Made by a program: the position numbers and the translations under genes. Of a stretch of 64,000 nt of DNA, positions 21,529 to 37,501 are shown one piece after another (positions within the stretch are counted from its first letter, which is position 1; each line of letters begins with the position of its first letter). The notes beneath the pieces were generated by a model. That model was not told the origin of the DNA, made no database searches, and worked only from the letters and a program-made list of their open reading frames with translations. This stretch comes from Corallochytrium limacisporum Hawaii (lineage: Eukaryota; Protista; Pluriformea). The stretch is taken from the NCBI GenBank assembly GCA_002811645.1, contig PDIP01000067.1:116550-180549 (forward strand). The letters are read 5' to 3'.

Positions 21529-22335
21529 TTAGTCGGCGTTAAACTGGTACGAGTCACGGAACAGAGCCTTAATGTCCACCTTGAGGTCCTTGGCCAGGCC
21601 AGTTGCAGGGTCGTAACACCATCCGTGAACTCGTGGCACCTTGTCGGCAATCATTTCCTCCGTTAACTCACCCTGATCAGGGATGCCCTCCTGTCCGAAC
21701 CATGCTTTCTGGATAACACTACTGTTGATCACACGACGCATCTGATCCTGCACGTTCAATTCACTCAGGCGACGCTGACCCTCCTTGACGGGAAGGGCGT
21801 CAATCTCGGCGCGATTCTTATGGTAGAGTCGCTTGATCTGGTTCGTCCATTCGGAGACCAAAGAGATGTAGTCCTTGGTCAGAGCATGGTTCACACCTCC
21901 GCAGTTGTAATGGCCGCAGATGATGATGTCCTTGACCTTCAGATTCTCCACTGCATACTTGAAGGCAGCCATGAAGTTCAGATCTGTCTCTTTGCAGAGG
22001 TTGGCAACATTACGGTGCACAAAGATCTCGCCAGGCTTGCGGCCCGTCACATCTGTGGGAGGAATGCGGGAGTCAGCACAGCCAATCCAGAAGATGTTCG
22101 GGTATTGCACCTCAGCCAGACGCTGGAAGAACTGTGGATCATTATCTTTGTTCTTCTTGGCCCACTCCCGGTTGTACTTGAGCAAAGGGGACACGTCGTC
22201 GTCGTACATGGTCTTACGAGAGGCGTGAAAATTACGGCTAGCCGTGCCAAGGATCGAATTCTGACTGCTGCGCACAAGTACCTGTCGGAATGGGGTCCTG
22301 GATACAAAACTGGGAAGAATTGCGGTACGGATCAT
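21529..22335 (-). CDS. Beta-class carbonic anhydrase with a probable mitochondrial presequence
   Basis: Zn ligands in WIGCADSR and CGHYNCGG, plus PGEIFVHRNVAN. The N-terminal ~40 aa are Arg/Ser-rich with no acidic residues. Confidence 0.93.
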   Translation of the reverse strand: MIRTAILPSFVSRTPFRQVLVRSSQNSILGTASRNFHASRKTMYDDDVSPLLKYNREWAKKNKDNDPQFFQRLAEVQYPNIFWIGCADSRIPPTDVTGRKPGEIFVHRNVANLCKETDLNFMAAFKYAVENLKVKDIIICGHYNCGGVNHALTKDYISLVSEWTNQIKRLYHKNRAEIDALPVKEGQRRLSELNVQDQMRRVINSSVIQKAWFGQEGIPDQGELTEEMIADKVPRVHGWCYDPATGLAKDLKVDIKALFRDSYQFNAD

Positions 22336-24213
22336 TGGGCCTGCTTTCGCAATTGGGTGCTTGACTTTGTTACCACAGGCTAAGTTCTCAAATAGCCAAG
22401 GGGTCGTGCAGTCCTGATTGCAACTCTATCGAGAGTATTGGACTGTAAGTATTGAAATAGTGAATTCTCGAATGACGTGCTTGATGTGCGCAGTCATGCA
22501 GGAGTTTCTGGGGAAAGAACACGAATCGCCTCTTCCTTTCCGAGACAGCGGCACCCGAGCCCGCAGAGCCGCGCGAGCGATGGGAAAAAAAATAGGGGAG
22601 GAGGATGGGAATTGCAGGGGCTCAATAATCGTTTAGTCCTGCGCTGTCAGAGATGGTGTGAATGTAGAATGAGGAAGCGCACTGAGAGACTCCTGTCGGT
22701 GTGTGTGAGAAGGGAAGGTCTGGGGTGCTAAGCTTTGGGGCAGCTGTCCGTGTGAGGTGAGCGACTGCCAGGGTGGCGGGGAAGGGGGGGGGGGGGGTGA
22801 GCACTGATTGTCTTCCCACCGTTCTATTATTGGTCGGGATCACATTCTCCTGCGTACCGGCTGCCCCCATGTGTGTCTAATGTTCATCGTTTTATGGGGT
22901 CTTAGAATGTGTATGAGATGCCGGACATCCAAAGGATATTAAGATTGGGTATCAGTGCATTTGCGGTGGGATGTTTTTGGCATGGCTGAGTCTTTGAATC
23001 GTCCCATAGAACGGAACTAACATTCCGAAGCATTGTTTACGCTCCGAAGGTCCAGTGTGCCTACACACCAGACGTAACGAAATGAGAGAGGCCGACAGCC
23101 TGCTCGAGGAGCGATCGGATGTGCAGTTGGAGCACGGCTTCTTGTATTGAGGGTCAAGCTGTGACGATAACATAAGACTCTCTCGGGCAATGTCTCTGAT
23201 TCAGTCTATAGATGGCAGATCGCCATCAAACGGAGGACTTTTTCATGGTGTTCAGCCGTGCGACACTCTTTGGTAGTGACCTCTCTCCCTCGCTCGTACA
23301 CTGGAAATAGAAAGGCCCCTCCCGGGCTCACACAGGAAAGTTGAGATTCTGACGAGTGGGGCGCGCCCCCTTCCCTCTTCACCCGGGGGCAGACCACTAA
23401 ACAAAACTAACGTAATATTACGGCTTGCAAGGCCGTGCAAAGGAATCTAATTCATGTAATTCTGTCTATTTAGGGTAACAGTTTTACTATCTGTGCCCCG
23501 CACGTTCCTACGGTTCTGGTTTGGGTTCGCGGTCCGCCACTACATTCACTATGGACAGTTACAGCCACCCCGCCGATTTCCGCGGTAGTGACATACGCAC
23601 GACGCACACATGCACGCGCTGGACCGTAAGAAAACCCAGGACTTGTAAGAATTGCACTTTCGTGAGCAAGCTATTACCAACATTCCCATAATTCGACGTA
23701 TATATTTCATATTTGCCCGGTGGTGTTCAAACTAATGACCTATCTTTCCTGAAAAGTGTGCCGCCCATCCCCTGCAGGGTGCCCTACGTTTTGGAGCACA
23801 TTTGCGAGTCACGCGGGTTTCCTCGCATCGAGTACTGTACCAGTGCCTGTCACATATCTTACCCACAGGGCGCAGCAGTCAGCCAATTGGTGAATGATGA
23901 AAAAATTATTGGTCTTTGAACTGCACTCCCTCAGCACGCGAATCGGTGGAACATTGGGAACGGGGGGTACGCGATTTTTCTTTTCGCAGTTCCCACCGCT
24001 GGGCGCCACGAAAACCTGTAGGGTGCGGGCGGAATGACCCGGCGAATGAGAGACGGGGTGACAAAGGCACGTACCCGGCACGTGTGTGCACGCACAGGGC
24101 AAGGAGTACGGGCTATTCAAGTATTCAGTATCCTGTATCAGGACATGACTAATTTAACCATGTCTATCAGTTCTCTATCTAAACATAATTGGATCTGCGA
24201 AAAACATACAACA

Positions 24214-24737
24214 ATGGGTTCTCCAGCCAAGAAGAAGGCCGTTGAAGGCGCCAAGGACAAACCTGTCAAGAAGTCCCGCACCGAGGACGAGTCTGGATCC
24301 GAAACTGAGGTTGTCGAGGAAGGTGACACTCAGAAATCAGGGGGTGGCAAGAGCATGGACGAAAAGCGCGCTCATCACAACGCTCTGGAGCGTAAGAGGG
24401 TAAGTATTCTTTTGGGCTCAATTGTCGGAAGAGAGAGCCGGCATAGACACTGCGAACTCATGACTAAGAGCTAGTCACTAACCATTGAAAATTTTCTTGT
24501 GTATCTATTCTTTCCAATGTATAGCGTGACATTATCAAAAACAGCTTCGAGAGCCTGCGGGATACAGTGCCGAGCCTGAAGGGACAGAAGGCGTCCCGGG
24601 CCCAAATTCTGAACGGCGCGAACGATGTCATCAACAAGCAGCTGAAGACAAATGAAAACTTAAAGAAAGACATTGAGCGCATGAAGAAGCAGAATGACGC
24701 CATCAAGGCGGAAATCGAGGAAATGGAGAAGAAATAA
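24214..24737 (+). CDS. MAX: bHLH-Zip transcription factor Max (exons 24214-24399, 24525-24737)
   Basis: The spliced product reads EKRAHHNALERKR|RDIIKNSFESLRDTVPSLKGQKASRAQIL followed by a zipper. Intron 24400-24524 is GTAAGT...CACTAAC...TAG, phase 0. The ORF track does not show exon 2. Confidence 0.92.
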
Positions 24738-25046
24738 CCAATGGGTGTGAATCGTTATTACTATCACCATTCATTCCTTCAAGTTTAAGATAATTTCATC
24801 ATATTACAGCTTTGTAAAGGGCTATTCCATTCGACGAAAGAAGGTGAACATGAAGGGCAGCATGCAGTCACATGGGTTCAGACTATTGGATGCTGACAAA
24901 CATTACAAGGCAAAACCAGAATGATGATAGGATGCTACTGATGGTACTCATGCATTCGTTCTTTATGAAACACGATGACACAACTTCGAACAGGACAGCT
25001 ATGTTGATTGCAAACATTCTTCAGGCGTTGTGAAGACAGGAAAGTA

Positions 25047-26159
25047 CTACGATACCACAGTAGCTGCCTTCTTTACAGAGCCTTTGTCTCTGTTACCTCC
25101 GCTGGCAGCTCGTTTTCTAGTCGTGCGTCCGGCGCTGACACTGCCAACAGGAGAAGGAGCAGACGAAGACAAGTTCAGCTTGCGTCCACCATTTTCGCCA
25201 TTTAGGGACGTCACTGGGTTCTCAGGCAGATAGTTATCTCCATCCAGTATCGTATTCGGCTTTGCGGCCACATTGCGGAACTCCTTCAACGACAGAAGAT
25301 CCTTTGCTATACCTCTGACCTCATCTTCCTCCACGCTCTGTGCAAATGCGTCTCGGATCGGCCACAGATCATATTCAATGTCCTGGTCTAGGTCCTCCAA
25401 CGCAGCCAGCAGGGCTGCCATGCCAATGACTTCAGGTTCATAGCACGCAATCCAACCTGTGCAGTGGCTCCAGTGCGCGTACCGGAACGTCAGAGCCGCC
25501 AGGGATTTCTTGGCCTTTATAGCGCGCAAAACATTGTATGTCGCACGGCGAACGTGCATGGGTGTCAATTCGTACCCAAGAGTTTTGAGCACTGTTCGTT
25601 CCCAAACTATCATGCTTTCGACTTTGTCCTTCATCTCGGGATCGTGCATCTGTAGGTGGCGGCCCTTGGACGGGTTTCCGCTAGTTGCTCGCTGCACAAC
25701 ATCCACGGCGCAACAGATGCGCTTTGAGGAGACGTAGAAGTACTCACATTTGCCAGCAATATGAATACAGGACGGGATTACCTGCCATTTGGGACACTGG
25801 GCAAAGGACTGCAACGTGTAGAATCTCTGGTACAAGAATATTGCGCAGAGCCAGGGCTTTTCGCCCATTTTCATCAGGCGGCAGATGTCTGTGATGTACG
25901 CGGCACCTTGCCTCCGCTCGTACGCCAGATCCTCCTTGCTTACCTGCGAAGCAGGCGGTGATTTGAGCATGGTAGGATCAAAAAGTACGTCGATGCGTGG
26001 TGGACGCTCAAGTGCAGACCTTGTGGGACTACTCGGCGTCGGGGGCGACTGCGAGGAAGGTTTAGGTTGCGCAGATGTGGGAGTTGTGGAGGCAACGGAT
26101 GCAGTATCAGCCACTTGGGTTGGCTGCTCCTCTGCAGGTTTAGAGTCGTCTGCTGTCAT
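25047..26159 (-). CDS. Transcriptional cyclin (cyclin K/T/L family), divergent
   Basis: Cyclin box ERRQGAAYI...QRFYTLQSF...IAGKCE...WERTVLKTLGYEL. Confidence 0.8.
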   Translation of the reverse strand: MTADDSKPAEEQPTQVADTASVASTTPTSAQPKPSSQSPPTPSSPTRSALERPPRIDVLFDPTMLKSPPASQVSKEDLAYERRQGAAYITDICRLMKMGEKPWLCAIFLYQRFYTLQSFAQCPKWQVIPSCIHIAGKCEYFYVSSKRICCAVDVVQRATSGNPSKGRHLQMHDPEMKDKVESMIVWERTVLKTLGYELTPMHVRRATYNVLRAIKAKKSLAALTFRYAHWSHCTGWIACYEPEVIGMAALLAALEDLDQDIEYDLWPIRDAFAQSVEEDEVRGIAKDLLSLKEFRNVAAKPNTILDGDNYLPENPVTSLNGENGGRKLNLSSSAPSPVGSVSAGRTTRKRAASGGNRDKGSVKKAATVVS

Positions 26160-26552
26160 GCTAGTTAGACTAGACGAAAAGATTGAGTGTTACTTTGCTT
26201 GAAAAACTAACGGCTAGGACCCTACATGTCTCCCAAATTATTGCCTTGCTGCGGGAGGAGGGGCGTTTTTCTTCTCGTTTCTCGTACGCTTCTACTAACT
26301 TTGACTTATCCACGGAGTGTTATCAGTACATTCATCACCATCTTTGTCGTAGATTAAATACACCGATCTCATTACCGTCATCATAAACTAGCGTATGTGA
26401 CTGTTCATGCACCGGAAGTACCAGCCCACAAATCGGAGCAGAACAAAGGTTTTGCTCACTAGACCTCACGCTCCCATGCCTTAGACTTCTTGTTGCCCTT
26501 GCGAGCACTGAAAACTCGCAGTACACTACCTACCGCAAACAGCGGCCCGGTC

Positions 26553-26631
26553 CCCCACTCACCCGCCGCAATCTCTCTCTTCCCCTCCCTCTCTCTCTCC
26601 CTCCCCTCACTCTCGGCCCCCCCCTCCCCCC
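26553..26631 (+). repeat. ~79-bp pyrimidine-rich direct repeat, copy 2
   Basis: Essentially identical to 20149-20227. Confidence 0.85.
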
Positions 26632-27039
26632 GGGGGGTCTCTTACGCTAATCTGTGTGAGAGACACGGAAGGAGATTTAGTGAGAATGTCAAAAAGAGAG
26701 CGCGAGAAGCCTAGAAAATGAAAGGATGACCGCTGCAGACTCAGCATACTCAGACTATACCACCGGGCCTGCGTCCCACCGTCACAATTTTTTTTTCCTT
26801 TTTTTTTTTTGTCCAAGCGGCAGCAGCCCACCCACCCACTCCCTCCCGCCACCTGGTGGCTGCCCCAGAGTTGCACTCCCTCACCCCCTCCGCCGTACGA
26901 CCCCTTTTATTTTCCTTCGTGTGAGTGAGTGAGTGAGAGAGAGAGCGAGTGTCTTCTGTCCTCTCGCACTTTTCTTCAACTCTTCCCGACCCATACTTTC
27001 GACCGCACCAAAATTCTCATTTCCCCTTACCTCCCCCCC

Positions 27040-27492
27040 NNNNNNNNNNNNNNNNNNNNNNNNNNNNNNNNNNNNNNNNNNNNNNNNNNNNNNNNNNNNN
27101 NNNNNNNNNNNNNNNNNNNNNNNNNNNNNNNNNNNNNNNNNNNNNNNNNNNNNNNNNNNNNNNNNNNNNNNNNNNNNNNNNNNNNNNNNNNNNNNNNNNN
27201 NNNNNNNNNNNNNNNNNNNNNNNNNNNNNNNNNNNNNNNNNNNNNNNNNNNNNNNNNNNNNNNNNNNNNNNNNNNNNNNNNNNNNNNNNNNNNNNNNNNN
27301 NNNNNNNNNNNNNNNNNNNNNNNNNNNNNNNNNNNNNNNNNNNNNNNNNNNNNNNNNNNNNNNNNNNNNNNNNNNNNNNNNNNNNNNNNNNNNNNNNNNN
27401 NNNNNNNNNNNNNNNNNNNNNNNNNNNNNNNNNNNNNNNNNNNNNNNNNNNNNNNNNNNNNNNNNNNNNNNNNNNNNNNNNNNNNNNNNNNN
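27040..27492. other. Assembly gap
   Basis: Run of N flanked by C/G homopolymers. Confidence 1.
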
Positions 27493-27851
27493 GGGGTTGA
27501 GGAGAGGCGCTCAAGGGGGACCTTGAGTCCACTGGCCACCCCGCTTTGCTTATTTCTGACTGACTGGAGCTTTTCTTTGGCAGGCTTTGGGAGCGCGCCC
27601 TGCGGAGCGATTTCGGGGCGGCAAGGTAAGGGAGGGGCTGGCTGGTCAACGAAAGGGGGGTTGGGTTTGGGGGTGGGGTTCCCCCGCGGGAGTGTTGTCA
27701 TCGCTCTCCGGGCCTCGTTCGGCCGATTTCAAGTGCGTCCGGCTGGGGGATAGGGACTCCGGGAAGGGCTGATGGTCATCAGGCGATCCTTCCCCAAACG
27801 ATGGCAGTGTGCAATGGACGGTTTGCAAAAGTAGTTTATTTGGTCACAAGG

Positions 27852-28661
27852 TCATAGAACCAGATGGTTGTGCTGCTCGCTCTGAATAGGAGCGGTAGTG
27901 AAGCCGGAGGTAATGCGGCCGGCGCATACCTTGGCCTCAAAAATGGACTTCAGATCCGCAGCTGTTGCATGTTCAGGTCGTGGGTCTCTTCGATTTCCGC
28001 CAAACGGTTGTTGAGGGACCTTTCTATGCTTCCTTGCTCACGGATCTTGTTGTTGAAGGCCTCACGCATGGTAGGCTTCCTGGGTGCGTTCGGATCGATG
28101 GCTGCGCAGTCTGCATTCTCAACGTAAACCTGCAGTTCTGTGGCCAATTGCTCTTGCAAGACATCCAGCAAATCACACTTGTGCGTGAGTTGGTGGTACG
28201 CCGATTCACTGGCAAATGCCTCCTGGCGCAGAATGTTGACATCCTTGATTAGTTTGGCCCTCTCTTTGACTAGAACCGGGTTGCTCTTCTCGTAGGAGGC
28301 TTGCGTATCCTTCAGTTTTGCCGCGAGTTCAGCTTGGGTTGTCTTCTCACTCGCAAGAGCTTTCATCATCGGCTCCAGCCGGGTCCGCTTCTCTTCCAAG
28401 ATGTCAGCAAGTTCCTGAACCATAGTTTGGATCTGCAGGAACTGATCCTCCGCAGATGACTGTCCAATGTCAAACCCTTCTCCTGCACAGTAGTCGTCGT
28501 CATTGTCCGCTAAGTTCGTGGTTTCGACATCGTCCGGCGACGGCATGTTCGCAATCACGGCAAGTCCATTGGTGCAGAGTTGCATGAGCAAGTCCTGCCA
28601 ATGACAAACCCTTGTTAAAGGGTTCTCTGTTGAGACAATCGATGATCAGTTGAACATCCAT
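27852..28661 (-). pseudogene. IFT81: Intraflagellar transport protein IFT81 remnant (two frameshifts, large internal deletion)
   Basis: Frame 1 reads MDVQLIIDCLNREPFNKGLSL (IFT81 N-terminus). Frame 2 reads QDLLMQLCTNGLAVI...MVQELADILEEKRTRLEP...SESAYH...MREAFNNKIREQ...THDLNMQQL (C-terminal coiled coil). Frame 3 reads ADLKSIFEAK...NHLVL* (extreme C-terminus). Confidence 0.8.
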
Positions 28662-29380
28662 GGCTACTTCCGAGTTTCTATTCACTTCCTCATATCCGAT
28701 CTCACGGTATGCCAGAACTCAACACCTGCTACCTTCCGTTTCGCTGGTTTCCAATTTCTGTAATGCTATTCCATTTACTAGCATATACCAACTTACACAC
28801 CGCTTGATAGTACACAGGCTAAAAACTGGACCAAAATACCAAACTGAGAACCGCTATTCCCGATGGCTCTCACTCCAAACCTTACGACTATTCATCTTCC
28901 CCTCTCCGTCCCTACACCCAACAGGGACCCCACGTCCCCTCCCCCCACTCTGGAAGGCAGCCCAAATTGCCTTGGCGAAGGGAAAAAGCCAGCAGCCCAC
29001 CGATCCCCCCTTCAACTGAGAAACCCCAGCTCCCCGACCTCCGACTCTTTTGCCTCCCCACCCGCTTCCTCTTCGTTGGTAGGGACTGTGCGGCACCGGC
29101 CTTCCCGTGTGCGGGTCATTTGGCCGCTTCTGTGGCGTTGCCGGATCGCCGCCGGCCAAAGTAGATTGCCTGCTCGCAGTGAACGGATTGACAGAAGGAA
29201 GCCACCAAGGGAGAAGATAACCAGGAGATGAATAGTATGGCATAGGGATATTGGATCTCTTTACGAATGGGTGCTTGGGATAAAGAGCACAGCAATTCAT
29301 GAAATGGTAATGCAGGACGACTCTGTCTTTGAAGGATGTCCACAGTTCAAAAAAGTCTGAGAATTACGTAAGATTATCAA

Positions 29381-30040
29381 CTAGATCTCGTCCTCATCAC
29401 GCTTGGGGGGACCATAATCCTTACGCATGTACTGTAACCATCTTTCAAAGTCATGGAAATGGGATCGGAACGGTTCAGGCGTGAATCCAAGGAAATACGT
29501 GATGCCAATGAACCATAGGAAGCATACGGACAACGAGTGACTGGCCTGGAACAAACGCCATGACCAGGGGTAGCCCAGTGATGACGCCTTCCGTGCTGCA
29601 TAGAGGTACTGTCCGGTACCAATTGCAATGAAGATACCGCTGCAGATCATTAGAAAGAGGCCGGCTAATTCTGCGTCATTGGCGTAGATACCCGCGCCGG
29701 CGGTGGTGCTGAGGAATCCGTTACGGCTCCAACTGAGAAGATTGTTTTCGTGGCTCAGACGTAAAGCCCAAAGACTGCGTTCCTTCTCTGCAGTCCAACC
29801 CTTTTCGAAACCCGGAATGCATTCCTTTGTGCCTGGTAATTTGTCAGCGTCTGGGCTGAGCGCTGGAGGCTCGGTGTAGCTCTCTTGCCCTTGTGAACCA
29901 AGAACTACTTTTCGGCGGTAAAAAATCCTTTGATTGAGAAGGCAGCCTCTGTGTAGCGGTGATTGTGTGAGATTCTGTAGTGGTGTTTTCTGCCTGAGGA
30001 AGACTTGCTGTGTGTTGCGAAAGAGTAAGCGTCCAAACAT
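29381..30040 (-). CDS. TMEM160: TMEM160-like mitochondrial membrane protein
   Basis: WALRLSHENNLLSWSRNG resembles the TMEM160 motif WLLRKAHETAFLSWFRNG. It has a basic presequence and about three hydrophobic segments. Confidence 0.78.
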   Translation of the reverse strand: MFGRLLFRNTQQVFLRQKTPLQNLTQSPLHRGCLLNQRIFYRRKVVLGSQGQESYTEPPALSPDADKLPGTKECIPGFEKGWTAEKERSLWALRLSHENNLLSWSRNGFLSTTAGAGIYANDAELAGLFLMICSGIFIAIGTGQYLYAARKASSLGYPWSWRLFQASHSLSVCFLWFIGITYFLGFTPEPFRSHFHDFERWLQYMRKDYGPPKRDEDEI

Positions 30041-30374
30041 CGTGCCTCGTGTTACGAAACGGTCCCGATAGATTATCCGGGCATTCCAAGAACTACTTCA
30101 ATCCGCAACTACTTATGCTACACGATGGCAACATTTATTGAAGTACCTATATTTTTCAGCTCGCAGTTCTTTTCTGCGTCAGGTGGAACACCAAAGTAGA
30201 TTAAACAACCTGGAGCCGGCGCTGGTCAGACGCGGATCCGCGGCCCCGGTCACGAAAATATTCTGTTTCACCGTCGGGTCCGTACGCGAGACGAGACGAA
30301 GGGAGGGGGAGGGGTGGGGACGAGCGATTGGCATCCAAGCAGTGCTCTCGCAATCTCAATAGGAGCGCGCCTGG

Positions 30375-32204
30375 TCACTGCCACTGGGAGATTCCGGACT
30401 CCAGACCTGTAAACAGTAGGCGTGCGTCCGGTGCCCAAAAGAAATCGCGGAACTCCATGTCAGCGGGCTTCACGGAGAGGAGCTGATCGAATTTTTTGCG
30501 GGCGTGCCATACGTTGACGACATGGGGTCCGTCGGTGTCTCCCAGCGCCCATGACACACCGAGGTACTGACCAGAGGCATCATATCGCAGTGAGTTGATA
30601 ACCGGAGCTCTGTCATGGCCACTTACTGGCGGTTCCAGTGCCCTGACCTCTGTGAGTTTTCGAATATCCCAAATGCGAGCCGAGTTGTCTTCGCACAGAG
30701 TGGCAAGGTGGTAGCCGTTCTCCGAGAACTCCATGGAGGGCCTTTGCCACTTCGTACCACACACCGGTGACGTTGTGGGGATCACCGTGACCTGGGACAG
30801 AGTGCGCAGGTCATAGAAACAGATTTCACGAGGCGAGGCCATGGCAAGGATAAGGCCATCCGGATGCACAGCACCGCCACGAAACAGATCCTTCCCTCCG
30901 ATCCCAGGTCCGCGGGCCACCTCTGTGCCGTCCTCGCAGTTGAGGATATGCCAGTTATGCGTGCTCATTGCCACCGCGTACGGATCGCATGGGTGTAGCT
31001 GTACGCCTGTGGGGGTAACCCCTGTGTCCAGGAAGTCAGTCCACTTGATAGACCAGTCCTTCTTGTGCTTGCCCTTGGTGGAAATGTCCTTAATCAGGAC
31101 GTGATCAATGGTAACGGAATCAGCAACAAGCATCCTTGCCTCACTAACAGCAAGGTACTCCGGGTGACCCTCAAAATCGTAAAAGTTTTTGGGTTTCGTA
31201 CCACTACTGTCACTGTCCAACTGCTGATGATAGATGGGCACTGTTTTACGGCGCCTCTTGGGGTTAGCATCTACAAAGTAACGACCCATTCCACTGTGCG
31301 TAACCAACCGGCAGACCATACTACTCATGACCTCGACCTCCGATCCCTTGAAGTTCTTGACATCCTCCGGTGACGGTAGATTGACTGGCTTTTCTTTCTT
31401 CTTCCGCTTTGCTGTGAGCTCCTCAAATGTTCCCTGCAAATTTGGCAGATGTATTTTCTCCCAGTCAACACGCAGCTCCGCAGCTTTTCCTTTGGCTTTC
31501 TTACGTTGAGGTCCCTCGTCTTCGTTCTCTTCGTCTCCAAATCCGCCGTCCACGACCGCACTGTCCGCCGCCCCGTTTGTTCCATTCGCTTCAGGAGCTT
31601 GAGTTATTCCGGCTGGCTCTGTGGCTACTCTCTTTGTGGGGCGATCAGTGGCGTCTTCCTGTTCCACAGGTTCAGCATCGCCGTCTGCTTCCGTACTCGA
31701 CGGCACGTCCTTGCGTTTTCCATTGGTTGTAACCGATGTTTCCTTCTTCTGCTCTGACTGCTTTACTGAGCTCAACTGATCGGGTGCGACAGTTTGGGTT
31801 TGCTTCTGTAGCCGTGCAATTACGCGGCAGGCTGCATCGTACTGAAACAGCGCATGGGTCAGTTCCTTCCGCGTGGCATACACCTGCTGCTTCAGTTTAT
31901 GATTCTCCAATACTACCGAGTCCCATTCAGACTGAAACGCTTTCAGCATGCCCGGAATGGTGGTCGCACCCAATGGGCGAGGCTGGGCAATCAATGATGC
32001 ATCAGGGGGATTAATGACCACCACGTCTGTGACCGGGTCAACTAGTTTGCCATTGACGGGATCTTTTCCATCATTTTCATCCAGGTACCGCAGAAGTAAT
32101 CTCTTCTCAAAGACAGCCCCTGATACTCTGGAGACCACCGGTTCATCGGGCACCTCTCCGCACAAAGCACAGACAAATGCCGCTGCATGGCCCGCAGCCG
32201 TCAT
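30375..32204 (-). CDS. PRP19: Pre-mRNA processing factor 19 (U-box, tetramerisation coil, WD40)
   Basis: CALCGEVPDEPVVSRVSGAVFEKRLL; TIPGMLKAFQSEWD...HALFQYDAACRVIARL; HPDGLILA; FSENGYHLAT; YDASGQYL. Confidence 0.92.
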   Translation of the reverse strand: MTAAGHAAAFVCALCGEVPDEPVVSRVSGAVFEKRLLLRYLDENDGKDPVNGKLVDPVTDVVVINPPDASLIAQPRPLGATTIPGMLKAFQSEWDSVVLENHKLKQQVYATRKELTHALFQYDAACRVIARLQKQTQTVAPDQLSSVKQSEQKKETSVTTNGKRKDVPSSTEADGDAEPVEQEDATDRPTKRVATEPAGITQAPEANGTNGAADSAVVDGGFGDEENEDEGPQRKKAKGKAAELRVDWEKIHLPNLQGTFEELTAKRKKKEKPVNLPSPEDVKNFKGSEVEVMSSMVCRLVTHSGMGRYFVDANPKRRRKTVPIYHQQLDSDSSGTKPKNFYDFEGHPEYLAVSEARMLVADSVTIDHVLIKDISTKGKHKKDWSIKWTDFLDTGVTPTGVQLHPCDPYAVAMSTHNWHILNCEDGTEVARGPGIGGKDLFRGGAVHPDGLILAMASPREICFYDLRTLSQVTVIPTTSPVCGTKWQRPSMEFSENGYHLATLCEDNSARIWDIRKLTEVRALEPPVSGHDRAPVINSLRYDASGQYLGVSWALGDTDGPHVVNVWHARKKFDQLLSVKPADMEFRDFFWAPDARLLFTGLESGISQWQ

Positions 32205-33241
32205 GATGTTAAGGGCGTTGTTCTTACGCTTTCTCTCACCAAATTCAATTTAACTCACATTGTGTACGTAATTCAATCCATGCTAGAGTCTCGATTGTGT
32301 ACGTCAACCTCAAACTGCACAAAATTCCGACCTAAGTTTATTGGGATTGGACTTGGGGTCTCCTCTCAAGTACGACAACCAACTTCCCTGCATGGAACTT
32401 CGCGCGCCCATCCGAAACCCACCCGGCCGCCCCGCCTCGCTCCGTGCGGCAATATTATATACTGACATATTTGTAATCGTGAAACTTTGTTGTATTTTGT
32501 ATTTGTGTATTTGTATCTAGTGCTTCTCTTTCAACCTCCCGGAACCTCCGGTACCGAATGTACTGGAGGAGGCGGGTGTGGGTGCCGTTACCCCCAACTC
32601 CGATCAAGTACAACTGCCAGAACGGATTTTTCCCCGTTGTGAGGCTGTTCGCTTCCGCGCTCTCATGGCGATAGACTGCCATTTCTGGGCGGTTCACTCT
32701 GCCCGGATCCCCCCAACCCTCCCGGGGGCTCCCGGTCTCCGTTACTCTGAAGCTGTCTTTATTTGTTTTGAATTTCTCCTTCGGGGCTTTCTTGAAGCAA
32801 CACCTTCTCCTGCCTGGTCAGTCTTGCATTTCAAACGGCCCTTTTCTCACACGCACGAGTGTACGGTGCCAACAAATCACCCACACAAAAAACTCGAGCA
32901 CCATTTTGTGTGCGGTACAACCGTCTAACAACTTGAACTGAAAAGACAGTGTTATTGATCACAGCTGCCGGTTCTGCGATGCTGCCGATGAGGTGTGAAT
33001 GACGCGTTCGCTTGGCATAGCTGAGCACCACGGACCTCATTGTGATAGCAATGGATATAAGCAGCTTGAGAGAAAATGGACTGTATGTTTATTTTGTGGC
33101 ATTTTTTGATCAAAGAATGAATGAATAAACACCGGCTATTTCAGAGCAAGTAAGCAAATAAAATTGCACGCTCCTCAACAAGTTTCTGTATTCGTAGAAA
33201 CCGGGATTCGTTCAATTGTCGGACAAGAATACCAATCAACC

Positions 33242-33463
33242 ATGGATGCAATTGAGGACGTATACCAGCCTGTGAAGCAGTTCGCTGACCAGAGCCGCCA
33301 GTTTCTGCGCAAGTGCTCTAAGCCCGACCGCCGCGAGTACCGCAAGATTGCCTTCGCCGTAGCCATTGGTTGCGGTCTGATGGGTCTGATCGGATACGTC
33401 GTTAAATTGGTGCACATGCCCATAACCCGTATTTTGCTGGGCTCTGACTCAACAACTGCGTAA
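33242..33463 (+). CDS. SEC61G: Sec61 gamma subunit
   Basis: KCSKPDRREY..IAFAVAIG..LMGLIGYVVKLVHMPI; ATG at 33242. Confidence 0.95.
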   Translation: MDAIEDVYQPVKQFADQSRQFLRKCSKPDRREYRKIAFAVAIGCGLMGLIGYVVKLVHMPITRILLGSDSTTA

Positions 33464-33736
33464 ACCTAGATTTGATGGCCGGGTTCCAAGCGATTCATTT
33501 CAAATATTCACCGCCATCGATGTAAGGGGAGGACAGTCTCGGTTGACTGTCCCAAATGTAGAAGCGATATAAAGCAACATCAACAAATATAAACAACTCG
33601 GTAGCAAACACTTACCATACAACCAGGAGCATCAAACTTCACTCTTCCTTTGAACCTTACTATGTATTTGTCAATTTTGCAACACGGAGAGAGATATAGC
33701 GGGTGAATGAGGATAAGCAACATCGGGGGGAACAAA

Positions 33737-36700
33737 CTATGAGGTCTCGGTGACCTGAAGCTTCTGATTGTATGTAGCCTCCCAGCCCATGATGAGACGC
33801 CGAAGTGCATGGAACTGCGCATTGGTGAGCTTGGTCGACTCCTCTTCTGCGTGCTTGATCACCTCCTCCAACTCAACAAGGACCTCCTCGTTCTTCTTTT
33901 TCTTTTTCTTGTCCTTGTCGAGCTTGGCGTGGAAGTCTTGCAGTTCCTCGACAGTTGTGGCAATGCACTCGAATCCATGATCCTCTTCGAGCGTGAACGT
34001 AAAGGATTCATTGTTGTCCTTGAAAAAGTCAACTGCAGGGTCGTGCTCCACCTTCTTCTCAACTTCATCGACTTGCATCGCCACATCATCAGCCGATGCA
34101 TTGGCGTTCTCCAGCACCCTCTCGACGTCTTCGTTACTTTTCATCTCCTGCTCGTTTTCCTCGTCTTTCTTTTCCTCATCTGCTGTTGTCAAATCTCCGT
34201 TCGCGTTAGGCTTCTGTTGCTCGTCCTCCTTCATCTCGGGCTTGTCATTATCGTCGTCGGCCTTGGCATTGTCGTCGTCAGCTTTGGCATCGTCAGCCTT
34301 GGCATTGTCGTCGGCAGCTTTGGCATTGTCAGCCTTGGCATCGTCAGCCTTGGCATCGTCAGCCTTGGCATCGTCAGCCTTGGTGTCGTCAGCATTGGTA
34401 TTGTGATCCTTGACATCGGCAGCTGTGAGATTGTCATCTTTGGCATCGTCATGGTCAGCCTTGCCGTTATCATCGTCGGAAGAGCCAGCCCCGCTGTCGG
34501 CCATCCTTTGATGCCGCGTCCGTGGCGTCTCGTCGTCTTCAGATGCGATTGTTGTTGTGCTGCCCCTAAGTCCGCCACGAAGACCGCGGCGTGTGGAGCT
34601 GCGGATGGCCTGAGAGCTGCGACCGCTTGCTTTGTGCTCGACCTTGGCAGTACGCTTGGTGCCCTTTGATGCCGCAGCTGCCGTTGAGTCACCCTTGGAG
34701 CCCCTCTTCTTCGATTTCTTCTTGGCCTCCTTCAGATCTTGCCGGTCCTTGCCGTGGGCTAGCTCGCGGTACACGCGCAAACATCCATTCTCCAGGAACT
34801 GAGGGAAATAAAAGTACGCATGACCGTCCGCATCGTTTCCAAGCTCAATGACACGCTGCGTGTCTGCGGCAACTGTCTGGATCTCATCGCGCATGGCACC
34901 ATTGCGTTCTAGTGATAGACGGCAGAGCGTGTCCAACATCAACAGCCGCGTAGATAGCGGCCACATGTAGAAAAGGAACGGCTCCCCTTCTGGCCGTGGC
35001 TTCTTGAATGGGTTCTTGCGCCCAATTTCCTCAACCGCGTCCATGATGAAGAATGCGTACTCATCGGCCAGAGCCTGCTCTTCTTCTTCGTCGTCCTCCC
35101 ATTCTGCGATGGCATCCCGGAGTTCGTACCAGCCGTTGACAGCCTGTTCAAACTTTTCCTCCCATTTGGCATGGGGGTTTCCTTTGACCCTGATCCAGGA
35201 TAGCAAACCATCCATCATCTCCCTAAACATGGGTGCAAACTCCATGTACACAAGGGACATCTCAAACTCATACATATTGAACTTTTCTTCCAGTTTCAAA
35301 CTGTGCTGTACCAGCCAGATTAAGAGACCAAGGTCAGCCACCTCCCAATATTTGCGTACATGTTGGATGCGCTTCTCATCGAGCAAGAAACTCTTGAAAT
35401 AGTCCACTTTCTGTCCCATAACCTGCCGCATATACTGCTCCCGTTGACGCGCAATGGCATGCTCCCGTCGTTCGGCTTCGACCGCCTCGCGCTCCATGAG
35501 CTGGACCAGAGACATCTGCATGGCACCACCACGGGTGCGGCGTGTGCTGCGGCCAAATATGGCCTCGTCCTCGACATCACCCATATGCTTAGCAGCAAAC
35601 GGACTTGCAACGTTCATGGCACACTTTTCTTTTAGGTACACAGGCATGAGGGCAATCTTGCGCTCCAACTGTTCTTCTATCTTCTTGGCCAGTTTGCTGA
35701 CGTCACTGTCCGGTCCGTTGTACTTGTAGCAGTTGATGAGCATCTGACGCATGTCGCTGACCATTGGAGAGATGCTGCCCTTATACTCTCCGTTGATCAT
35801 CTTGTTCTTTATGGTGTCCAGATCCATGGGCTCGTCGATGACGTCATAGTAATCATCAAGGCCCATCCCCTGAGCATCCACAGGCTCTTCAAAGGGCCAG
35901 ACATCCGGATGGGTGGCAAGGTCGCACCAGAGCGCATAACTCTTTTCCATTTCAAGGTCCGCGTTGCTCAGGTAGTCATCCCACTCTGTGGCGTCGATTT
36001 CCTTCTTTTTCTTTTTGGCCGGAGCCTTGGACTCTACGGTCTCGTCTTCCTCCTCCTCATCTACTTCATCTTCTTCGACCTCTTCAGGCTCCTGGATACG
36101 TGTCCGTGATGTTGTCCGAGGAGCAGGCCTTGATGGCTGCTTGGCAGCCTGTGCCGCAGCAGCAGCCTGTGCCTCAGCCTCTTTTTTACGCTTTGCTTCT
36201 TCCGCAGCAAGCTGTCGTGCCGTCTTTGCGTAGGTTTGGCCCGGGTTTTGGAAGCGCGCCTTCAATTTCTGTTCTTCTTTCCGGCGTTTGGCCTCGCGTT
36301 CCTTAGCCTTGGCTGCCCGCTTCTTAGCGGCCTGCTTCTTTCTATCAGCCTTGGTAACGAAGTCATCATCATCATCTGGTTCAGGTTCGTCGTAGGACTC
36401 TTCCTCTTCTTCTTGATCCTCATCTTCCTCGTCTGCATCTTCTTGGTCCTCCTCATCTTCATCCTGCTGCCCATCAGTATCTTCACCAGATCTTGACTTG
36501 ACTCCGTTCAATTGTGGCTCGTCACCTTCACCCGGGGCGTTGTACAGAGTCTCATCTCGATGCGGCTGAGAGTAAGATATGGGCTTTGGCGAATCGCTCT
36601 CACCAAAGTCTGGCATGTCAACCGTGACCGCAGGCAGCACCTTAAGGTTCTCTTCCTTTGGCGCCGCAGTTGCTGCTGCTACTGCGGCCTCCGCCGCTGC

Positions 36701-37501
36701 CGTGGTCGACGGCTCTGGTGCCGTCGCAGCTGCAACAGCCGCCGCTGCTGCTGCCGCAGTCGTTGATGGTTCTGGGGCAGTCACCGCTGCTACAGCCGCG
36801 GCAGCAGCCGCTGCTGCCGCATTAGCTGCCTCTGCCTCAGTGTTATGCACCGATTCAGTTGTCGGCTTTGTCGTTGACTCCTTTGTAGTCGCAGTGACCA
36901 TCTGCGGCAGATGCTGTGGCTGAGACGGTTGCTTCGGCTGCTGAGTCCTTGACGGCGACACAGGTTGCTGAACTCGTGATGGTTGTTGGAATGTTGATGA
37001 TTGCTGCTGCGGGGTTCCTTGTGGTGGTGCTGAATATGGTGGTGGAACAACAGCGGAAGCATCCAGCTGTGGTGCTGGCTGCTGTTGCAGTGCCTGCTGC
37101 TGTTGCGGTGCCTGCTGCTGCTGCGGTGCTGGTTGCTGTTGCGATGAGGGTTGCTGTTGCCGCGATTGCTGAACATACTGACCAATCCCATAGCTGGCCT
37201 GGCTATAGTCGTAGCCGAAACCGGTTTGTGCTTGTGCTTGATTAATGTATCCTGGTTGCTGTTGTTGTGTTCCTGCCTGTTGCTGATTGAAACCCTGGTA
37301 GGTACCCATTTGGGGGAACCCTCCGTACCCGGTGTTCTGCTGCGGAATCTGTTGACCAGGAAATCCCCCCTGTTGTTGCTGTTGAGGATAATTACCGTAG
37401 TATCCCATGTTTTGTGGATCGCTACCGAGACCACCCATTGGGTTGTATCCTTGACCTTGGTTCCTATCACCTTGATTTCCGTTGTAAGGATATCCAGACA
37501 T
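33737..37501 (-). CDS. Bromodomain protein, BRD10/KIAA2026-like, with Gln-rich N-terminus
   Basis: Bromodomain (WPFEEPVD...DYYDVIDEPMDL...NCYKYNG), then WEVADLG...LGNDADGHAYFYFPQF...RVY, which resembles the conserved block of KIAA2026. Confidence 0.8.
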   Translation of the reverse strand: MSGYPYNGNQGDRNQGQGYNPMGGLGSDPQNMGYYGNYPQQQQQGGFPGQQIPQQNTGYGGFPQMGTYQGFNQQQAGTQQQQPGYINQAQAQTGFGYDYSQASYGIGQYVQQSRQQQPSSQQQPAPQQQQAPQQQQALQQQPAPQLDASAVVPPPYSAPPQGTPQQQSSTFQQPSRVQQPVSPSRTQQPKQPSQPQHLPQMVTATTKESTTKPTTESVHNTEAEAANAAAAAAAAAVAAVTAPEPSTTAAAAAAAVAAATAPEPSTTAAAEAAVAAATAAPKEENLKVLPAVTVDMPDFGESDSPKPISYSQPHRDETLYNAPGEGDEPQLNGVKSRSGEDTDGQQDEDEEDQEDADEEDEDQEEEEESYDEPEPDDDDDFVTKADRKKQAAKKRAAKAKEREAKRRKEEQKLKARFQNPGQTYAKTARQLAAEEAKRKKEAEAQAAAAAQAAKQPSRPAPRTTSRTRIQEPEEVEEDEVDEEEEDETVESKAPAKKKKKEIDATEWDDYLSNADLEMEKSYALWCDLATHPDVWPFEEPVDAQGMGLDDYYDVIDEPMDLDTIKNKMINGEYKGSISPMVSDMRQMLINCYKYNGPDSDVSKLAKKIEEQLERKIALMPVYLKEKCAMNVASPFAAKHMGDVEDEAIFGRSTRRTRGGAMQMSLVQLMEREAVEAERREHAIARQREQYMRQVMGQKVDYFKSFLLDEKRIQHVRKYWEVADLGLLIWLVQHSLKLEEKFNMYEFEMSLVYMEFAPMFREMMDGLLSWIRVKGNPHAKWEEKFEQAVNGWYELRDAIAEWEDDEEEEQALADEYAFFIMDAVEEIGRKNPFKKPRPEGEPFLFYMWPLSTRLLMLDTLCRLSLERNGAMRDEIQTVAADTQRVIELGNDADGHAYFYFPQFLENGCLRVYRELAHGKDRQDLKEAKKKSKKRGSKGDSTAAAASKGTKRTAKVEHKASGRSSQAIRSSTRRGLRGGLRGSTTTIASEDDETPRTRHQRMADSGAGSSDDDNGKADHDDAKDDNLTAADVKDHNTNADDTKADDAKADDAKADDAKADNAKAADDNAKADDAKADDDNAKADDDNDKPEMKEDEQQKPNANGDLTTADEEKKDEENEQEMKSNEDVERVLENANASADDVAMQVDEVEKKVEHDPAVDFFKDNNESFTFTLEEDHGFECIATTVEELQDFHAKLDKDKKKKKKNEEVLVELEEVIKHAEEESTKLTNAQFHALRRLIMGWEATYNQKLQVTETS
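34250..34395 (-). repeat. Coding 15-bp tandem repeat (DDAKA/DNAKA)
   Basis: Repeated gccttggcatcgtca units on the + strand inside the bromodomain gene. Confidence 0.9.

Follow-up and report, generated by a model that had tools for sequence, protein, structure and literature searches.

A Probable Unitary Pseudogene of IFT81 and the Uneven Fate of Intraflagellar Transport Genes in Corallochytrium

Corallochytrium limacisporum is a single-celled relative of animals for which, to our knowledge, no flagellum has been described, and its genome carries a readable trace of IFT81, an IFT-B1 scaffold. Does this trace betray a hidden flagellated stage, or is it what a lost flagellum left behind? Two papers cite, and still repeat, a cryptic flagellated stage inferred from gene content by way of gene-presence lists (PMC7147346; PMC12731214), and centrioles are present (PMC11153136). 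Reading frames, as opposed to gene lists, point the other way: the locus is very probably a unitary pseudogene of IFT81 that is still transcribed, a relic of the collapse of IFT-B that followed flagellum loss.

An IFT81 remnant in three reading frames

The locus lies on the minus strand at 27852-28661 of the window, i.e., the whole 64,000-nt stretch of DNA analyzed. A sequence-only reading had proposed a remnant spread over three frames, from an ATG at 28661 to a stop at 27852, and all of its pieces were located as described. Positions 28599-28661 hold the native ATG and the initial 21 codons of IFT81, with which the tubulin-binding CH domain begins; read onward past frameshift 1, this frame yields a 53-aa product that stops at 28500. 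The middle frame is stop-free over 28597-27953 (645 nt, 215 codons) with a coding-like GC3 of 0.65. Its first segment (28553-28597; QDLLMQL...), just past shift 1, bears a weak likeness to IFT81 residues 33-47, the second helix (6.8 bits, 0.12 expected by chance). A 36-codon linker to which no IFT81 segment can be assigned (28445-28552) then spans the large deletion; a mosaic composition of this linker, from remnants of residues ~294-309 and a GEEF motif, was promising by eye and was rejected as non-significant. The C-terminal coiled coils, equivalent to Syssomonas residues ~480-639, follow at 27962-28444. Frameshift 2, with ~3-4 residues lost, opens the native IFT81 tail (27852-27959), which is read in the frame 27959-27855 and closed by a TGA ending at 27852. 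It had been warned that automated annotation would take the middle frame for a protein, and EukProt does list a 198-aa product from ATG 28546, along with a 128-aa IFT52 stub.

Homology was assessed with a 29-sequence IFT81 profile over ~500,000 background positions, and human and other vertebrate entries were excluded from the alignments. The N-terminal 20 aa scored 33 bits, the best of all background positions, and the C-terminal block 78 bits. In the tail, the last 10 aa are the top match in the window (0.007 expected in the locus) and the first helix has a chance expectation of 0.03. The middle ORF matches Chlamydomonas IFT81 484-628; among 1.8 billion representative proteins its best non-self match is Syssomonas IFT81 (E 7.5e-10), and all 27 of its 27 matches align to one and the same IFT81 region. 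With its best matches in IFT81 and its pieces colinear, the locus appears to be an IFT81 orthologue by descent. A tree gave the remnant no supported placement and a very long branch (3.98; the median is 0.78).

The nearest orthologue is Syssomonas multiformis EP00128_P000842, a 678-aa protein that is 28% identical across the 194 residues aligned. As in that protein, the start, C-terminal coils and last residues are colinear in the remnant, whereas the CH domain is cut to ~20 residues, residues ~46-479 are absent and two frameshifts intervene. A frameshift-tolerant alignment recovers residues ~4-23, weakly 34-45, ~480-639 and 643-678, placing the small lesions at residues ~24-33 and 640-643; in Syssomonas numbering, residues ~1-23 and 480-678 are kept. 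The central loss, earlier put at ~400 residues, is thus corrected to ~435 (46-479). It had also been held to remove most of the CH domain together with the IFT74-binding coils. The first part stands, as only positions 2-21 of the 124-position CH-domain family PF18383 are matched, and a PF18383 search of the whole genome was blank. The second holds only in part: the kept C-terminal part corresponds to coiled coils (CC) VII-X, which serve both in IFT74 pairing and in the binding of IFT27/25 and IFT52C/46C (PMC9753473).

An intact paralogue would make the locus a dead duplicate. The draft assembly (24.11 Mb, 286 contigs; 83% BUSCO; PMC5560861) was searched throughout with the Syssomonas protein and with a profile; neither a second IFT81 copy nor a middle fragment was found, and this locus held the only trace. 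Four genes of the assembly are identical to EukProt entries that bear Clim_evm names. The single ~680-aa frame with CC I-X that a functional IFT81 needs was found neither at the locus nor in the reads or the draft assembly.

Broken ciliary partner genes

If IFT81 fell with its pathway, its partners should be damaged as well, and this expectation was largely borne out. IFT57 is almost full length and split over two frames. IFT54 has a frameshift within its CH domain and no detectable C-terminal coil. IFT46 is reduced to its C-terminal domain (last ~110 aa), itself frameshifted, and IFT52 to its C-terminal 128 aa, intact from Met to stop. KAP3 retains a frameshifted C-terminal half, B9D1 has one stop, and B9D2 has two stops and one shift. 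These lesions were read from the assembly, the comparison of reads covering the IFT81 locus, and the dead genes together carry at least 11 lesions in 4.6 kb. No intact copy was found of the IFT-B partners that a functional IFT81 requires (IFT46, IFT52, IFT57, IFT54, and IFT20). IFT20, IFT80, IFT38, the IFT172 TPR region, IFT43, RSP3 and BBS9 were not found in the draft assembly, which is weaker evidence than a lesion, the controls of the search tool being prokaryotic.

Several observations accompany these lesions. The IFT52 stub is annotated as Clim_evm74s144, and a tRNA-Val(AAC) gene lies ~150 nt upstream of it (contig C173, near 219400-220000); the 5′ deletion of IFT52 may have stopped at this tRNA gene. 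All three stops in B9D1 and B9D2 are TAG, two at what we take to be conserved Trp codons. Recoding of TAG was considered and is unsupported, the third TAG not being at such a codon. A second gene of the tubby family, beside an intact copy on C246, is degraded to short pieces with stops and shifts (C272:24781-24876).

The motors tell a similar story. A single dynein heavy chain was found, in a 4907-aa frame; we take it to be cytoplasmic dynein because of its length and because it stands alone. Neither an axonemal heavy chain nor one of the IFT dynein, dynein-2, was found in the genome. The kinesin necks examined, all but three, are presumably not of the kinesin-2 kind, to judge by the features we take as diagnostic. 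As controls, 12 of 12 kinesin matches and 40 of 41 small-GTPase matches lack stops. The one small-GTPase match with an internal stop (TAA; C178:163081-163533, minus strand) is probably a ciliary Arl gene.

The sequence-only reading had called for a check of IFT-B, dynein-2 and kinesin-2 genes for like lesions. Such lesions are present in IFT-B, kinesin-2 accessory and transition-zone genes; IFT-A does not share in the decay. Those IFT-B and kinesin-2 accessory genes that were found are, by their reading frames, fossils, some of them annotated as proteins, and this mostly broken set of partners argues against a hidden flagellated stage.

Lesions, transcripts and competing accounts

Are the lesions real? 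A contig from the source DNA run covers 27538-30200 with zero differences. A second contig, from a probable RNA run of the same strain, covers 27816-30200, again with zero differences and no joint, and a third, assembled from what is probably RNA of a second strain, extends over 27815-28900 and also carries the large deletion and both shifts. The disabling lesions are therefore real in DNA rather than an assembly artefact, and no run yields the full-length IFT81 that would have refuted the sequence-only reading. The RNA label of both 2015 runs is a guess, and rare forms made by splicing or editing are lost from contigs; the two contigs are probably transcripts, because both end at 27815-27816, ~20 nt below an AATAAA at 27840-27835, an arrangement that fits a polyadenylated 3′ end. 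These RNA-like contigs copy the lesions unspliced and the locus unchanged, and the native ATG can therefore give only the 53-aa peptide. In strain 2 the RNA-like contigs leave a gap at window 28901-29122, and the strain-1 contig continues from the neighboring DUF202 gene into IFT81; the IFT81 promoter is probably in this interval, with read-through or overlapping ends possible.

The two strains differ within the relic. The strain-2 contig has 13 listed substitutions and a 2-nt deletion listed at 27985 (27984-27986). The relic differs at 11 of its 810 nt, the neighboring gene at 1 of 660 nt (Fisher p 0.016). In the middle ORF, four synonymous and six non-synonymous changes give an omega of 0.4-0.6 which, on 10 changes, is not different from neutral (p 0.15-0.34). 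The 2-nt deletion shifts the middle frame into that of the tail and replaces ~9 conserved codons with out-of-frame ones; one indel in three would rejoin the two frames by chance. A 2025 marine metagenome carries the same deletion and four of the strain-2 substitutions. Six marine metagenomes (2023-2025) contain small shares of the locus, and the alleles in the one examined are those of strain 2; public data thus give access to wild populations. No relative was found in JGI metagenome contigs.

How did the frame come to be broken? The earlier proposal was pseudogenisation driven by deletion. Pseudogenisation is supported, and shift 2 is a loss of ~10 nt. Shift 1, however, coincides with a 16-nt direct repeat that the earlier reading had missed, which suggests that it arose by duplication, or by insertion of a segment flanked by repeats, and not by simple deletion: copy 1 (28598-28613) has its 3′ edge exactly at the shift, and copy 2 (28464-28479, in the linker) is 15/16 identical and 134 nt away. 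Such a repeat was reached in 2 of 400 codon shuffles, with zero chance matches expected in the window. Likeness beyond the 16-mer, as a full 134-nt tandem duplication, has p 0.01-0.36 depending on the scoring scheme, and the 118 nt between the copies match none of the other sequences compared. The frame is broken at shift 1 whether by duplication or deletion.

The decay had been called recent. This fits the frame breaks, which look young, but the divergence at the protein level is old. Because the branch is so long (3.98 vs. 0.78) and yet has no in-frame stop, we infer, with no genome-wide rate baseline for the lineage entering the comparison, that most amino-acid change dates from before the frame lost its protection. 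Constraint would first have been relaxed for a long time with the frame kept, and the large deletion would belong to this period; small indels would then have killed IFT81 recently, shortly before the two strains split, and decay would be continuing. The decay that follows flagellum loss would thus have been caught while strains still differ.

Several points tell against a pseudogene: the 215-codon open frame, its GC3 of 0.65 and the omega point estimate of 0.4-0.6, the extra strain-2 deletion that happens to rejoin the tail, and the mutually binding C-terminal parts that IFT81, IFT46, and IFT52 have all kept. One rival is a live mini-protein of 198-211 aa, translated from an internal ATG of the middle ORF and part of a reduced IFT81C/74C/52C/46C hub, such as one at the centriole. 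The parts kept (IFT81 from 480 to the end, the last ~110 aa of IFT46 and the last 128 aa of IFT52) match a mapped interface (PMC9753473), the IFT52 stub was predicted from the hub idea before it was discovered, and an open frame, a transcript, a long stop-free branch and existing centrioles (PMC11153136) all suit it. Yet shift 2 cuts the hub interface in strain 1, strain 2 has proline-containing out-of-frame codons there, and the IFT46 stub is itself frameshifted. A clean stretch of 645 nt has p 0.22 at the dead-gene lesion rate, and strain divergence exceeds that of the neighboring gene. Retention of the C-terminus in three of three genes is statistically weak, with two of the three now frameshifted. 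A living mini-protein is thus improbable, and a C-terminal hub, itself only a possibility, would more plausibly belong to an earlier intermediate stage than serve a function today.

Could the lesions instead derive from mis-spliced cDNAs that replaced IFT81 during genome-wide loss of introns? In this lineage, whose genome measures 24.1 Mb, intron density dropped from 5.5 per kb of coding sequence to 0.0 (PMC5560861), and an animal intron at residue 49 may lie close to where the N-terminal piece ends. Against this, neither small lesion coincides with an intron of Saccoglossus or Blyttiomyces, the two of four reference genes that could be mapped, and the intron at 488 falls ~8 residues inside the C-terminal block. 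Skipping of exons at ancestral introns was rejected on the same breakpoints, and replacement by cDNA has very little left to commend it. The window also contains a Max-like bHLH-zipper gene (24034-24620, plus strand) with a real intron in an almost intron-free genome, and the neighbors of the relic at 21529-37501 are intact intronless housekeeping genes encoding a beta carbonic anhydrase, a cyclin, a DUF202 protein, Prp19, Sec61-gamma and a bromodomain protein.

Fainter still is the prospect that a hidden flagellated stage recovers its ciliary genes through rare splicing, RNA editing or ribosomal frameshifting, although such a stage is in print (PMC7147346), several lesions need an identical one-base shift, and one 100-nt GT-AG stretch would rejoin shift 1. 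The bHLH-zipper intron supplies a local consensus (GTAAGT donor at ~24400, branch-like CACTAAC, AG acceptor), and the candidate splice sites lack its GTAAGT and branch point; most GT-AG stretches able to rejoin the frames would also delete homologous codons. The earlier statement that no consensus intron repairs either shift is thereby upheld. Neither a signal shared by the IFT81 breaks nor a difference between transcript and DNA was found in the contigs, and the RNA-like contigs have no joints, though rare forms would escape contigs. The lesions are of several kinds (frameshifts of either sign, stops, and loss of 5′, middle or 3′ parts) and polymorphic between strains, and recoding is unable to supply 435 residues not found in the genome, or the missing dyneins. 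Assembly error or collapse, for which a short-read assembly and an N-gap ~360 nt downstream of the stop might speak, is refuted, since all junctions are covered by contigs assembled separately from three runs, of which two show zero differences and the third belongs to a second strain.

Open IFT-A genes and known systems

A unitary pseudogene of IFT81 is in itself an ordinary kind of object; the surprising part is the contrast between a dead IFT-B and an open IFT-A. IFT122 is a single open frame of 1188 aa with 36% identity to animal IFT122 over 100% of its length, and IFT121 (1462 aa), IFT144 (1857 aa, with many in-frame insertions and propellers lacking a Pfam match) and IFT139 (1637 aa) are likewise single open frames. 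IFT140 (C25) is open over 1239 aa, ~390 residues short at its C-terminus and far more diverged than IFT122 or IFT121, and the tubby gene on C246 is intact. Because none of the ~52 lesions expected at the dead-gene rate was seen in the 22 kb of these five IFT-A genes, either selection continues to act on IFT-A or it ceased there much later than in IFT-B; even at one fifth of that rate, the absence of lesions has p 3e-5.

With less assurance, selection may act through a job outside the cilium. A bolder proposal, for which the chances are a little short of even, is that IFT122, IFT121, IFT144, IFT139, and a short IFT140, with tubby, work without IFT-B, kinesin-2, dynein-2 or a cilium and act alone as a membrane coat, the IFT81, IFT46, and IFT52 stubs recording an intermediate, minimal C-terminal IFT-B hub. 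The survival of IFT-A in reverse order makes it testable whether IFT-A has a coat role without cilia, and Corallochytrium can be stably transfected (bioRxiv 10.1101/2020.11.12.379420). No literature was found on pseudogenised flagellar genes in Corallochytrium.

Unitary pseudogenes are a known kind of marker for lost traits. The IFT81 locus resembles them in being single copy, with no intact paralogue found, broken pathway partners and polymorphism compatible with neutrality. It departs from them in that the remnant is still transcribed, with an apparent poly(A) end, and in that deletions and frameshifts dominate, with few stops.

For IFT-A, the closest parallel is the WDR35/IFT-A vesicle coat, where a motor-independent, COPI-like membrane role is described for IFT121, IFT139 and partners, the genes kept in Corallochytrium; there, however, the role was seen for cilium-bound vesicles in mouse cells (PMC8754431), and in Corallochytrium it would be a candidate role. 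Modular loss of IFT is familiar from van Dam 2013, as relayed in two later papers: Thalassiosira lost IFT-A and kept IFT-B, Toxoplasma and Neospora lost some IFT-B subunits, and Plasmodium lost both complexes (PMC5654045; PMC5850483). As in those cases, whole modules in Corallochytrium share one fate, and BBS9 was not found. Unlike the losses cited there, those of Corallochytrium fall on IFT-B, now dead or missing, and five IFT-A genes stay open in an organism with no known cilium.
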